Below are positions 57,038-61,054 of a DNA stretch of 64,000 nt, piece by piece (position 1 is the stretch's first letter; each line of letters starts with the position of its first letter). The position numbers and the translations under genes are program-made. Location: NCBI GenBank assembly GCA_977017575.1, contig CDRNVI010000016.1:186001-250000 (forward strand), read 5' to 3'. The notes beneath the pieces were generated by a model, which ran no database searches, was not told the origin of the DNA, and saw only the letters and a program-made list of their open reading frames with translations. Source of the stretch: Paramoeba atlantica. Its lineage: Eukaryota > Protista > Discosea.

Positions 57038-60000
57038 ATGTCCTGGGGAAATCCATCCGGTGCATGGGGAGGCGCCCCAAATCCAAACCCCACTCCAACC
57101 GGCTGGGGATCGACCACGAGCACAACCCCAGGGCCCACCGCTTCCCCATGGGGAAGCAGCCAACCTGCCCAACCCAGCTGGGGAGCCCCACCCACTCTGG
57201 GGGCGACCAAACCCGCCTGGGGGTCGTCCACCACCTCGAGCGCCCCCGCACCGTGGTCCGGGCTCCCCACAACGGCAACCACAACCCCCCCGGGCTCCGG
57301 ATCCCATCCCTGGGGGGGCGTCGCCCCCTCTGCTGCTGTTTCATCCGTACCCGCGCCTACGCCCTGGGGAGCCCAGCCCCCACGCGCTGCGCCCTCCCCC
57401 CCCCTCTGGGGCAGCGCCCCCACGACAGGGATCACCGCGACGCCTGCCGGTATGGGCTCGAGCCCCGGCAACGCGTGGGGGAGTGGTGGGGGCAGGAGTA
57501 GTGCTCCCCCGAGTACGGGACCCGGGGGGTGGGGGACTCAACTCGCCGGGAGTGCCCCAACCTCCGGGGCAGGCTGGGGTGGTTCGACCTCGGGAGGAGC
57601 CCCCTCGAGTGGGACACCGGCCTGGGGGACAGCCCCGGGGGCCCCCGTGAAGCCTGCTGGGGCTGGGGCTACGCCGTGGGGGAGTACGAGCACGGGGAGT
57701 AGTGGTACAGGGGGGTGGGGAGGGATGGGGGGAGGTGTGACGGGACTGGGCTCCACGACGACACAGACCTCTCCGTTTGGTACGGCCTCTGGGACACAGC
57801 CTCCTGCATGGGGAGGAGGGACTGGGGGGTTGGGAACGACGGGGAGTGGAGGTTCGGTTGCAACGGTCAGTGGATGGGGTGCGGGTCCGACCCAGCCCGC
57901 TGCGAGTAGCACGCTGAGTACCTCTGGAACCTCCTGGGGGTTGGGTGCGAAGCCAGCTACGAGTTCGTGGTCCACAACCGCGACTTCAGGAGTTCTTTCT
58001 GGAACCACACCGTTTGGCAGTTCTCAGACGACGTTGTCCAGCTCCACACCCGGGCCTTCCCTTGGTTCTTCGGCGCCATGGGCTCCCACCAAACCATCGG
58101 CTCCTTGGGGGGGCAGTGGGACGAGCGGGTCGGCGTGGCCCTCCCTGGGTGGATCTTTGCAGCCATCCGCGGTCCCTGCCGTGCCCTCGTTTGCGCCTCC
58201 CGCGAGTGCACCCACAGGGCCTGTGCTAGATCTAGTTCGTCACCCCTATGGGAACCTTCTGGAGGCTTCCGGGGAGAAGTTGCGCGCTATGAGCGAATCT
58301 AAACCTTTGGCCCACACGCAGAGCATCCCACGTTCCCTAGTGACGCGTTCTCGTTCCCAAGTACATCGGCTGCCGACACATGAAAAAGCGAAAAATCAGC
58401 ACAGTGAACGACAGCAAACGCCATTGACCTTGAGCACGGGTCATATACCCACTCTACAAATAGATGCAGAAGCATTGAGGAGATCAGCTTCCACTGTACG
58501 TGTGCGACGAAATGTTGATACTTCTTCGGAAGAAGAATTCGGAGCCGTGAAGAAACTTTCTTTACTAACCCCGCAACCAAGAGAGAACCACACGCCTGTT
58601 TGTGAACCCAACGAGCGTCCTACATGTGTGCGAGCGGGAGGATTTCCAACACTTGTGGATACGACGCATATTGGCATACTCCCAAGTCTTGATGAGCTGC
58701 AGAGTCGAACGCCGAATTCCTTAAAGGCGGTGCCCAACTTTGTTATCTATAGAAAAGACGGAAAATTGCAGGTCAACTTCTTGGAACCTGTTGACCTTAC
58801 GGGCTGCACGCTTGATGAGTGTGTACGTTTGCAAAGTAGCGGTCATGTGACTTTTCCACCCGCTTCCTCATTACAAATTCCTGCGCTAGTCCTTGTTCGT
58901 GGATTAATCGGCCTTTCACAGGATGACGTTCAAGAAAAATGCTTTCAGGATGGTAATGTATTTGTAGACTTTCTCAAGGAGAATGGCACGGACACACTAG
59001 TGTACTTAACTAATGCAGATTCCAGCTATGAAATACCTGACTTGTACAACCGCACCAATCGCTACGCCATCAACCAAGTTTTCCCGATTCAGCATGACTC
59101 GTTCCCAGGTGGTGACATTAGTTCCAAAGAGTTGCTCCCGACTGCTCTAGAATCGAATGAAGAAATCAAGAAAGCCCCAGTTTGGTCTAAAACGAGCAAA
59201 CAAACTATGAACTACGACGTGTTTCTTCCACGTAAAGAAGCTGATTCTAAAATTAGACCCTTCGATGGAGCTTCAGCTCGGGATCTCCGAGACGGATATT
59301 CGGTACTTTACAGACCACGTGCGGAGGCGGAAAACGCGATTGATCTTCACGACCACGCTTATACACCTGCAGAAAGATTGAGCATACCAGAAAATTTTAT
59401 GTCGCATGCTGATGTATCGGATTTTGCAGAAACAAATTCATCAGAAGAGCAGATTTGGCTCGAGGATATTGACTTTCGAACAATGGAGCCAGATAGAGAT
59501 TTTTCTGCCAGTATATCACATGATTTAATTCGTAATTTTAGCACAGAATCTCGAGCTCTGCTTAAAAATGTGCGCGGAAACTGGTCAAAGGAAGGTTTGC
59601 TGTGCATTCCGTCGGGTGCAATGTTGGGACGAAAACACGTTCAAGCGAGCAGCATTTACTCAATGCGCTCTATCGCCACGTCATTCGACGTCGGTGATTT
59701 GGTTACCGCTTTTTCTTACATACAGTCTTGCACGAAACCACGTGATGAATTTCCGAGCACGGCGTCGAAAAGAAATGTTTGCTTCCGTACAGAAACTACA
59801 GAGGGAAAAAACCTACTCGCATCTCTACATGCCCTGGTAACACCCAAACTGCACGACTACAAAAATTTGAGCCCGGAAATTGCGCTCAACGATTTACTTA
59901 GAGAGACAATGGAAGAGGCCATTGGATTACTTCGCTCCTGGTTCGAATTAGAAGGAAGCGTATGTATGGAAGACAAAGATTATGAGGAAACTTATAACGA

Positions 60001-61054
60001 AGGTATGCGGCGACAAAATATTCAAGATTGGTTGGGTGAGTGCGTGAAAAGAACAGCTGGAAGTCCCCGCTTCCCAGGAAAACCACTATTCAGTCTTTTG
60101 CTGAAAAGAAGAACTACAGAGGCAGTTGAGCTTTGTATTTCAATGTCAAAGCCCGAACTTGCGGCGATTCTTGCTGGGACTGGATACGGCGCCGTTAGTA
60201 ACGCCACTGATTGTGCCCGTTCATATCTGAACGAAAAGTATGAAGAATTATCCGACGATCACAAATCATGTTTAAAGCTAGCCGCTGGAGATCTCGACGA
60301 ACTTCTGGACGAATGTCAATTTCAATATAAAGAGGGAAAGGTAAGACGAAATCCACTGGGAGCAGATTGGCATCATTTGCTGGGTGCCTACATGTGGTAT
60401 TGTGCTCCCTGTTCTTGGTCTTTGCGGAAGTGTTTTTCTAGCTTTAGAGATGCCTTACGGAATTGTAAGGAACTCAAAAATGGTAGATATAATTCATTCG
60501 AGAGAGTAGTACCGCATTACGCCTTTCTAGGAGATGTCTTGAGCGATTCTGGTAACGACTTTTCAATAAAAATTGCCAAGAGCGCAATGAAACGGAAGGA
60601 TATTACGTATCTCTTGCTTCAGCATTTTTGTGAACAACAGCCCGATTTTTGGAACTATCTCTTGGTTCCTTTTTGCCACTCCCCTTATCCCTTGGATTAC
60701 TTGTTGCCTACTATCATTGTTCTAGTTCTAAGGTCCAATTCTTGTGCCCCAGATCAAGTAGCAGATTCAATACTACTACGTTGCATTACACAACTGGAGC
60801 ACCTACAAGCACATGATTGCAGTATGACATTGATGACACTTCTATGTAATGAAGAAATTCGACAAAAACAGAGCGAGGAGTATATTCTTCGTAATGCTAC
60901 TTACTTTAATAAGAGAGAAGCCGGATCGATATATGATCTTGATGTAAATAGTCACGCGCAAGCCGATACTAGCGGTGTAACAACGACCGGGGTGCAGAGT
61001 AAAACTGTGGACGTGGTCAGAGAGGTACGGAGTGCAGTACACAACCGTATGTAG
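57038..61054 (+). CDS. NUP158: Nup98-96 homologue (kinetoplastid Nup158 type)
   Basis: Ser/Thr/Gly/Pro-rich WG repeat domain; autoproteolysis-fold segment LPSLDEL...VPNFVIYRKDG...FLEPVDLTG without HFS; Nup96-like solenoid (IQDWL, LFSLL...EA...LA, DWHHLLG..MWY). Confidence 0.8.
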   Translation: MSWGNPSGAWGGAPNPNPTPTGWGSTTSTTPGPTASPWGSSQPAQPSWGAPPTLGATKPAWGSSTTSSAPAPWSGLPTTATTTPPGSGSHPWGGVAPSAAVSSVPAPTPWGAQPPRAAPSPPLWGSAPTTGITATPAGMGSSPGNAWGSGGGRSSAPPSTGPGGWGTQLAGSAPTSGAGWGGSTSGGAPSSGTPAWGTAPGAPVKPAGAGATPWGSTSTGSSGTGGWGGMGGGVTGLGSTTTQTSPFGTASGTQPPAWGGGTGGLGTTGSGGSVATVSGWGAGPTQPAASSTLSTSGTSWGLGAKPATSSWSTTATSGVLSGTTPFGSSQTTLSSSTPGPSLGSSAPWAPTKPSAPWGGSGTSGSAWPSLGGSLQPSAVPAVPSFAPPASAPTGPVLDLVRHPYGNLLEASGEKLRAMSESKPLAHTQSIPRSLVTRSRSQVHRLPTHEKAKNQHSERQQTPLTLSTGHIPTLQIDAEALRRSASTVRVRRNVDTSSEEEFGAVKKLSLLTPQPRENHTPVCEPNERPTCVRAGGFPTLVDTTHIGILPSLDELQSRTPNSLKAVPNFVIYRKDGKLQVNFLEPVDLTGCTLDECVRLQSSGHVTFPPASSLQIPALVLVRGLIGLSQDDVQEKCFQDGNVFVDFLKENGTDTLVYLTNADSSYEIPDLYNRTNRYAINQVFPIQHDSFPGGDISSKELLPTALESNEEIKKAPVWSKTSKQTMNYDVFLPRKEADSKIRPFDGASARDLRDGYSVLYRPRAEAENAIDLHDHAYTPAERLSIPENFMSHADVSDFAETNSSEEQIWLEDIDFRTMEPDRDFSASISHDLIRNFSTESRALLKNVRGNWSKEGLLCIPSGAMLGRKHVQASSIYSMRSIATSFDVGDLVTAFSYIQSCTKPRDEFPSTASKRNVCFRTETTEGKNLLASLHALVTPKLHDYKNLSPEIALNDLLRETMEEAIGLLRSWFELEGSVCMEDKDYEETYNEGMRRQNIQDWLGECVKRTAGSPRFPGKPLFSLLLKRRTTEAVELCISMSKPELAAILAGTGYGAVSNATDCARSYLNEKYEELSDDHKSCLKLAAGDLDELLDECQFQYKEGKVRRNPLGADWHHLLGAYMWYCAPCSWSLRKCFSSFRDALRNCKELKNGRYNSFERVVPHYAFLGDVLSDSGNDFSIKIAKSAMKRKDITYLLLQHFCEQQPDFWNYLLVPFCHSPYPLDYLLPTIIVLVLRSNSCAPDQVADSILLRCITQLEHLQAHDCSMTLMTLLCNEEIRQKQSEEYILRNATYFNKREAGSIYDLDVNSHAQADTSGVTTTGVQSKTVDVVREVRSAVHNRM

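Follow-up and report, generated by a model that had tools for sequence, protein, structure and literature searches.

Must the selective barrier of the nuclear pore be built on phenylalanine? The field regards the FG repeat as the chemistry on which all nucleocytoplasmic transport runs, and a Nup158 whose repeats are WG would be an exception to this rule. The question is raised by one gene in a stretch of 64,000 nucleotides from the Paramoeba atlantica assembly GCA_977017575.1 (contig CDRNVI010000016.1, positions 186,001 to 250,000 of the forward strand). We call this whole stretch the window and use its positions throughout. The gene is a complete coding sequence (CDS) on the + strand (57038..61054), a single open reading frame (ORF) of 1338 aa, and it encodes a Nup98-96 nucleoporin of the kinetoplastid Nup158 type that we predict to be uncleaved. 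The Phe-Gly repeat domain typical of the Nup98-96 family is missing; there are 2 FG versus 19 WG in aa 1-395. We believe that in this orthologue the sticker that gives the pore barrier its cohesion and binds receptors is probably Trp, in the place of Phe. Below we present the evidence that the domain is real and that it stands where an FG domain is expected, and then weigh the other ways in which such a domain could have come about.

A WG domain in a Nup158 orthologue

The domain covers the first 395 aa (57038..58222, + strand). It is of low complexity and depleted of charge, with 0 Asp or Glu, 4 Lys and 2 Arg, and its composition per 400 aa is 83 Gly, 69 Ser, 62 Pro, 58 Thr, 50 Ala and 23 Trp. 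The WG dipeptides lie at aa 3, 10, 23, 38, 48, 61, 92, 110, 124, 147, 165, 180, 196, 214, 227, 258, 280, 300 and 357. A preliminary description, made from the sequence without database searches, had claimed 19 WG and only 2 FG in the first 365 aa or so, and a dipeptide count gives exactly these numbers, with the FG at aa 247 and 326. It had also named PWG, AWG, GWG and SWG as the usual contexts; the residue before Trp is indeed Pro in 7 cases, Ala in 6, Gly in 5, Ser in 4 and Leu in 1. These 23 Trp all fall within aa 1-367, every one of them is encoded by TGG, they are spaced 7-37 aa apart, and 19 are followed by Gly. When aa 1-395 were shuffled 100,000 times the mean number of WG was 4.8 and the maximum 14. 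Together with 6 LG and 2 MG, the WG and FG make 29 hydrophobic-Gly motifs, or one per 13.6 aa. Tandem Repeats Finder found no tandem repeat in the DNA of this domain beyond a 15-bp scrap, and it follows that the 19 WG represent old units, by now diverged, each of which has been kept individually. On the same result we reject a recent tandem amplification of WG units.

It is fair to ask whether the repeats exist at all. Apparent WG repeats could arise from a misread frame, an error of assembly or a start called in the wrong place, and there is some ground for suspicion: the public gene model of this protein (P0001, 1135 aa) starts only at Met204 (57647), and long-read assemblies are error-prone in GC-rich low-complexity DNA. 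We nevertheless give an artefact next to no credence. An in-frame TAA lies 3 codons 5' of the ATG at 57038, therefore the protein begins MSWG. A single frame is open from this ATG into the conserved domains, whereas both alternative frames of the WG-domain DNA are interrupted by stops. With no more than 3 Phe codons in the domain, FG repeats could not be recovered by any correction of the frame. Logan contigs from 3 short-read runs of one study reproduce the region 57038-61054 with 0 indels, and the 4 single-nucleotide polymorphisms (SNPs) that they show in the CDS (P84T, A195G and 2 synonymous) all miss Trp codons. Three short fragments of the C-terminal half are also identical in run X5 (2015), from a second study, which is only guessed to be RNA; none of the runs is recorded as RNA. 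The late start of the public model reflects a general failure of gene callers, found likewise in Bodo saltans and in several metagenomic relatives. With the short-read contigs in agreement and the alternative frames closed, a frame or assembly artefact is rejected. A further observation on the same reads is that two alleles show up as a bubble in the contigs of run X1, inside the WG domain (57591-57700), with 0 differences on one allele and 3 on the other, which indicates heterozygosity.

The rest of the protein tells us what kind of nucleoporin this is. The motif HPYGNLL (aa 402-408, 58241..58261, + strand) is a form of the conserved PYGN(V/M/L)LL that ends the repeat domain, and in the relatives it comes directly after the FG domain. 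It is followed by a Nup98-type autoproteolytic domain (APD) fold, presumably catalytically dead, at about aa 545-659 (58670..59014, + strand). The Pfam match to the Nup98 peptidase S59 family (PF04096, E 4.6e-5) is under the gathering score, at 24 versus 28.4 bits. An AlphaFold (AF2) model of aa 520-700, made with an 18-sequence alignment, reaches a pLDDT of 84 overall and 93-96 in the core, and when it was compared with the PDB by Foldseek the best 21 matches were all APDs of Nup98, Nup145N or Nup116 (E 1.5e-6 and weaker). The C-terminal part contains a Nup96 alpha-solenoid domain (aa 1017-1289, 60086..60904, + strand) with a Pfam PF12110 match of E 1.1e-17 and 64.5 bits versus a cutoff of 25; the best PDB sequence matches for this part, weak as they are (E 0.005-0.11), are Nup96 or Nup98-96 in 6 of 6 cases. 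The preliminary description had recognized both folded parts, as well as the loss of the cleavage site, and in this it was right.

The cleavage site deserves a closer look. In an alignment with kinetoplastid homologues the catalytic His-Phe-Ser (HFS) is absent from the end of the APD, and where a cleaving Nup98 has HFS the window protein has LVYLTNADS (58997..59023, + strand). Other kinetoplastids in the alignment also lack HFS and have W-x-Y-x-x-N at that site. TbNup158 has been reported to be without the catalytic residues, to remain uncleaved and to take its place in the outer ring as one FG/solenoid protein (PMC4758718). The window protein matches this kinetoplastid subtype, and we predict that it too is an uncleaved Nup158. 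The parts follow one another in a single chain as they do in TbNup158 and the other kinetoplastid Nup158, which are the orthologues of ScNup145 and HsNup98-96: N-terminal repeats, PYGN, an APD without HFS and a Nup96 solenoid (PMC4758718). In both the repeat domain is depleted of charge and starts at Met1. The window as a whole, with many intron-free ORFs in a row that are all on the same strand, resembles kinetoplastid organisation.

Sequence searches agree with this assignment. An exhaustive HMMER (phmmer) search with aa 400-1338 against 1.84 billion representatives gave 18 matches, all of them with APD similarity, Nup96 similarity or both. Every match with a named source is a kinetoplastid nucleoporin, from Trypanosoma vivax, T. 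conorhini, Bodo saltans, Phytomonas or Strigomonas. Word-based protein searches, run with aa 400-1338, the WG domain or a profile built from 15 sequences of the folded part, returned only the window protein itself and two non-kinetoplastid Nup98-96, and no other WG protein of the genome came up in them. The protein is very divergent: its identity to the relatives in the folded part does not exceed 21%, and its terminal branch measures 3.9 substitutions per site. Its placement in the tree is unreliable, being affected by long-branch attraction to the presumed outgroup P0018. The architecture and the named matches confirm that the window protein is an orthologue of the Nup98-96/Nup158 type, as had been proposed.

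Is WG perhaps usual among kinetoplastid Nup158? A comparison of N-termini had been called for to settle this, and the answer is that it is not. We read the relatives' repeat domains from the DNA upstream of the truncated gene models and counted the repeats before the PYGN motif. The closest match, L001 from an ENA metagenome, has 44 FG and 0 WG, and Bodo saltans (L003, NCBI genome) has 32 and 0. The others are alike: L009, of the P0019 lineage (ENA metagenome), has 41 FG, P0003 (Logan / ENA) 25, T. conorhini (P0005, NCBI, partial) 10, T. vivax (P0008, NCBI / UniRef) 46, P0014 has 56, P0016 (ENA metagenome) 33, and P0018, which is without the PYGN motif and was counted over its first 600 aa, 44, all with 0 WG. 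These nine kinetoplastid lineages with a readable domain thus range from 10 to 56 FG and have 0 WG each. TbNup158 has 58 FG in 565 aa (PMC4283134). The relatives' repeat domain begins at Met1 (MRGGFG, MTGGFG, MFGGGFG) and, except in P0018, ends at L-P-D-F-x-x-x-P-Y-G-N-x-L-L. The WG domain likewise spans Met1 to HPYGNLL, therefore the two are positionally homologous; the claim that a WG domain has come to stand in the place of the FG domain is borne out. They differ in stickers and spacers. The sticker of the kinetoplastid Nup158 is Phe where that of the window protein is Trp, and their stickers are denser in Gly/Gln/Ala spacers where those of the window protein are sparser in Ser/Thr/Pro/Ala spacers.

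One relative has a mixture. P0006 (Logan run SRR34068980) carries 11 GGWG, 20 GGFG and 4 YG, and GGWG, GGFG and GGYG interchange within one GG-x-G-(K)APAA unit. It is thus a second natural Nup158 with WG repeats, but W is in the minority and the unit, GG-x-G-K-APAA, is regular and Ala-rich. Within aa 1-460 the units with W are grouped in aa 1-300, and the units that follow have only F. P0006 is a natural intermediate between FG and WG, one in which W can occupy the F position of a pore repeat. Our weakly resolved tree does not group P0006 and the window protein as sisters, which suggests an independent origin; taken together, the two proteins imply that W was exchanged for F in a pore repeat at least twice. 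The dominance of WG in the window protein is confirmed as real and unusual, and it is not wholly unique. A different variant occurs in a metagenomic kinetoplastid Nup158 (L005:3-398, + strand, upstream of P0011, ENA ERZ27280287), which in the 128 aa that are visible before PYGN has 7 FN and 0 FG; its Phe-Asn repeats (GGGFNQGT) are reminiscent of the NIFN repeats of Tetrahymena. Full-text literature searches turned up no account of a WG nucleoporin in nature, nor did the literature searched contain a Trp version of Nup98 repeats, natural or engineered.

Such variation invites the idea of a specialised paralogue. There might be two or more copies of Nup98-96, the WG protein being one of them and a canonical FG copy performing the general function. 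A model for this would be the micronuclear Nup98 of Tetrahymena, which according to Iwamoto et al. is said to have NIFN instead of GLFG. That protein also departs from the FG motif in nature, though NIFN keeps the Phe and WG does not. The GGFN of L005 and the mixed W/F/Y of P0006 show that motif variation exists among kinetoplastid Nup158. However, the exhaustive search brought up no further close relative or FG-type paralogue among the 1.84 billion representatives, and the matches whose origin was traced all come from other samples; the tracing covered the matches other than six (P0013, P0014, P0015, P0017 and P0018 among them) and the named trypanosomatid entries. We regard a specialised paralogue as very improbable.

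Composition bias and the possibility of drift

The preliminary description had suggested that a G-rich mutational bias may have pushed Phe codons (TTT or TTC) to TGG. Part of this holds. GC at third codon positions (GC3) is 0.64 in the WG domain (57038-58222) versus 0.40 in the rest of the gene (58223-61051), no comparable rise is seen in the FG domain of L001 or of Bodo saltans, and GC at second positions in the WG domain is 0.88. A local GC-enriching process is real, and candidate causes are either biased gene conversion in the repeats or selection on the mRNA. What does not hold is that the bias could have made the domain by itself. The rest of the protein and 15 neighbouring ORFs have ordinary levels of Trp (about 1-1.2%) and Phe (3.6-3.8%), therefore bias alone is insufficient. 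We also reject a proteome-wide F-to-W bias, as Trp is not raised in either place. The change from F to W takes two substitutions, and GC bias explains neither the coupling of W to G nor the exclusion of acidic residues.

A broader non-adaptive argument is that the domain is a degenerating or neutral linker. Its role in the barrier would have been lost to other nucleoporins, and the N-terminus would have drifted by GC-biased mutation or gene conversion into a tract of G, P, A, S, T and W in which TGG-GGN is favoured. The raised GC3 that the two relatives do not share is in keeping with this, as are the second-position GC, the very long branch, a motif density below that of the relatives and a domain shorter than the 565 aa of TbNup158. 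We think this argument unlikely to be correct. Drift leaves unexplained why Gly follows 19 of 23 Trp when 1e5 shuffles never exceed 14 WG. It also leaves unexplained why 395 aa should contain no acidic residue at all and why hydrophobic-Gly motifs recur about every 14 aa without a DNA repeat. The path from F to W has to pass through Leu or Cys, and no Trp enrichment accompanies it in the rest of the protein or in the neighbouring ORFs. That all 4 allelic SNPs in the CDS miss Trp codons points the same way, though this is a weak point.

Tryptophan as a probable sticker of the pore barrier

What properties would a working barrier domain be expected to have? Ng et al. (2023, PMC9918544) characterize cohesive Nup98-type domains by depletion of charge, especially acidic charge, by about 1 hydrophobic motif per 12 residues, by a length of 500-700 aa and by selection against Trp, Tyr, Cys and His. 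The selection against Trp is, in their account, conserved in the Nup98 FG domains of all eukaryotic clades. The WG domain has no acidic residue at all, is roughly as dense in motifs as this and is shorter, and it violates the selection against Trp. Its aromatics are sparser, 1 per 15 aa versus 1 per 8-11 in the FG relatives. Its summed Wimley-White octanol energy per residue is -0.195, and that of eight FG relatives is between -0.18 and -0.235. We infer that a similar hydrophobicity is reached with fewer, stronger stickers, which fits the 'constant hydrophobicity' rule for Nup98 FG domains. The traits of a Nup98 FG domain that have been kept here, namely 0 acidic and 6 basic residues in 395 aa, a motif per 13.6 aa and a hydrophobic energy like that of the relatives, argue for Trp as the barrier sticker. 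In protein-language-model features the WG domain lies nearest to the Nup42, Nucleoporin_FG and NUP98A clusters, at 0.84-0.86, which is below the reliable range and serves as a lead only.

The scenario that we propose runs as follows. The protein would be made as a single uncleaved chain. The Nup96 solenoid would anchor it in the outer ring, and the disordered N-terminal domain would project into the transport channel. In the lineage of the window the hydrophobic sticker would have switched from Phe to Trp, so that WG would now recur about every 15 residues in an uncharged spacer of Gly, Ser, Thr, Pro and Ala, along with a few LG, MG and FG. The WG motifs would cohere with each other and thereby condense a selective phase, and nuclear transport receptors, which would have co-adapted to WG, would dock on them transiently.

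Could a barrier work without Phe? Engineered Nup98 repeats in which GLFG is replaced by GLYG or GLLG (YG, and Phe-free LG) still form selective phases and exclude native transport receptors, which has been read as co-evolution (Ng et al. 2023, PMC9918544). A non-Phe sticker is therefore physically workable. Those repeats are laboratory constructs, and the WG repeats of the window protein are natural. A natural WG protein of the Nup98 family would be unexpected, and it appears physically plausible.

Several points weigh against a switched sticker and should be stated plainly. The divergence of the protein is extreme, and relaxed constraint on its N-terminus is conceivable. The spacers are rich in Ser, Thr, Pro and Ala versus Gly, Gln and Ala in the relatives, and the motif density is lower; it follows that the domain has been rewritten, not simply substituted from F to W. 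Engineered YG phases exclude native receptors, and such a switch would accordingly have been costly (PMC9918544). The locally raised synonymous GC hints at a non-adaptive contribution. Finally, what the analysis establishes is the sequence, its orthology, the position of the domain, its rarity among the relatives and its likeness to FG domains in physico-chemical terms; barrier function, receptor binding and co-evolution are our proposal.

The other explanation offered in the preliminary description is that the WG motifs tether Argonaute (AGO) or PIWI proteins at the pore. The motifs would then be ligands of the Trp pockets, in addition to a barrier role or instead of it. Argonaute hooks have a generic format, Trp with small flanking residues in a disordered region, and it is found in GW182, NRPE1/SPT5L, Tas3 and ciliate GW proteins. 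The WG domain has this format: its Trp stand between small residues in disordered sequence, 7-37 aa apart. It shares with the hooks (GW182/TNRC6, NRPE1, SPT5L, Tas3, ciliate GW) their multiple WG, the small-residue context and a spacing that fits the two Trp pockets of PIWI. A hook would also be compatible with a simultaneous barrier role. On the other hand, the known hooks are, as far as we are aware, usually charged or Asn-rich, and the window domain is acid-free. It belongs to a pore scaffold protein and is positionally homologous to the FG domain of the orthologues. The alternation of W, F and Y in the unit of P0006 fits a generic hydrophobic sticker and not a ligand that must be Trp. Zero acidic residues is a signature of cohesive Nup98-type domains (PMC9918544). 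Pfam gave no match to the WG domain, Ago_hook included, although the FG controls were not matched to Nucleoporin_FG either, only to a spurious Prion_octapep; Pfam thus does not tell FG-like and hook-like domains apart here. A literature search found no link between WG nucleoporins and Argonaute. An Argonaute tether would seem to us distinctly unlikely.

If Trp does serve as the sticker of the barrier, the change may go beyond one protein. The whole permeability barrier could have been rebuilt on WG, possibly in every FG nucleoporin, and the FG-binding pockets of importins, exportins, NTF2 and Mex67 would have changed to match. This would be a natural, orthogonal 'WG phase'. We consider this stronger version possible and hold it tentatively, at somewhat less than even chances. 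If it is true, the organism of P0006 would represent an intermediate stage.

A natural WG protein of the Nup98 family would be a ready-made test of the co-evolution of receptors and FG motifs (PMC9918544). Sister lineages that use FG offer a comparison of receptors, and P0006, with its W, F and Y, offers an evolutionary intermediate. The case bears on why nature chose Phe, on the sticker/spacer trade-off in condensates, where fewer and stronger stickers are one solution, and on a possible overlap between Argonaute hooks and the repeats of the pore. Should the switch turn out to be genome-wide, its interest for the nuclear-transport field would be high.

Gene models and other kinetoplastid Nup158

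The reading of these domains is complicated by the public gene models of kinetoplastid Nup158, which are systematically truncated at the repeat domain. Examples are the window protein (57647), L003:4077-5000, L001:80-1837 and the upstream ORFs of L008 and L009. In the Bodo saltans model CUG94084 all 32 FG are missing. Gene callers moreover annotate the repeat DNA with spurious ORFs that are antisense or out of frame, for example the Q/E/A-rich '352-aa' and '409-aa' ones of L008 and L009. Where the domains are read, their composition can mislead a profile search: the kinetoplastid GGFGQP domains (L003:4077-4961; P0008 aa 1-475) match the Pfam family Prion_octapep (PHGGGWGQ) at E 1e-16 to 1e-21, a compositional false positive.

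In several Nup158 of free-living kinetoplastids a non-repeat insert of about 55 aa, which ends in E-M-L-H-W-D-E-(F/Y)-R, interrupts the FG domain. It lies at about aa 85-135 in P0003, 145-195 in P0006 and 100-155 in P0015, and also in the upstream ORF of L001. The window protein, Bodo saltans and Trypanosoma do not have this insert. We presume a resemblance to the Rae1/Gle2-binding GLEBS motif of Nup98; Pfam gave no GLEBS match for it. P0015 itself (2003 aa, trypanosomatid clade) has a single FG and 187 charged residues in aa 1-1008, before a PYGK junction. Either this Nup158 has no FG domain or its gene model is a fusion.

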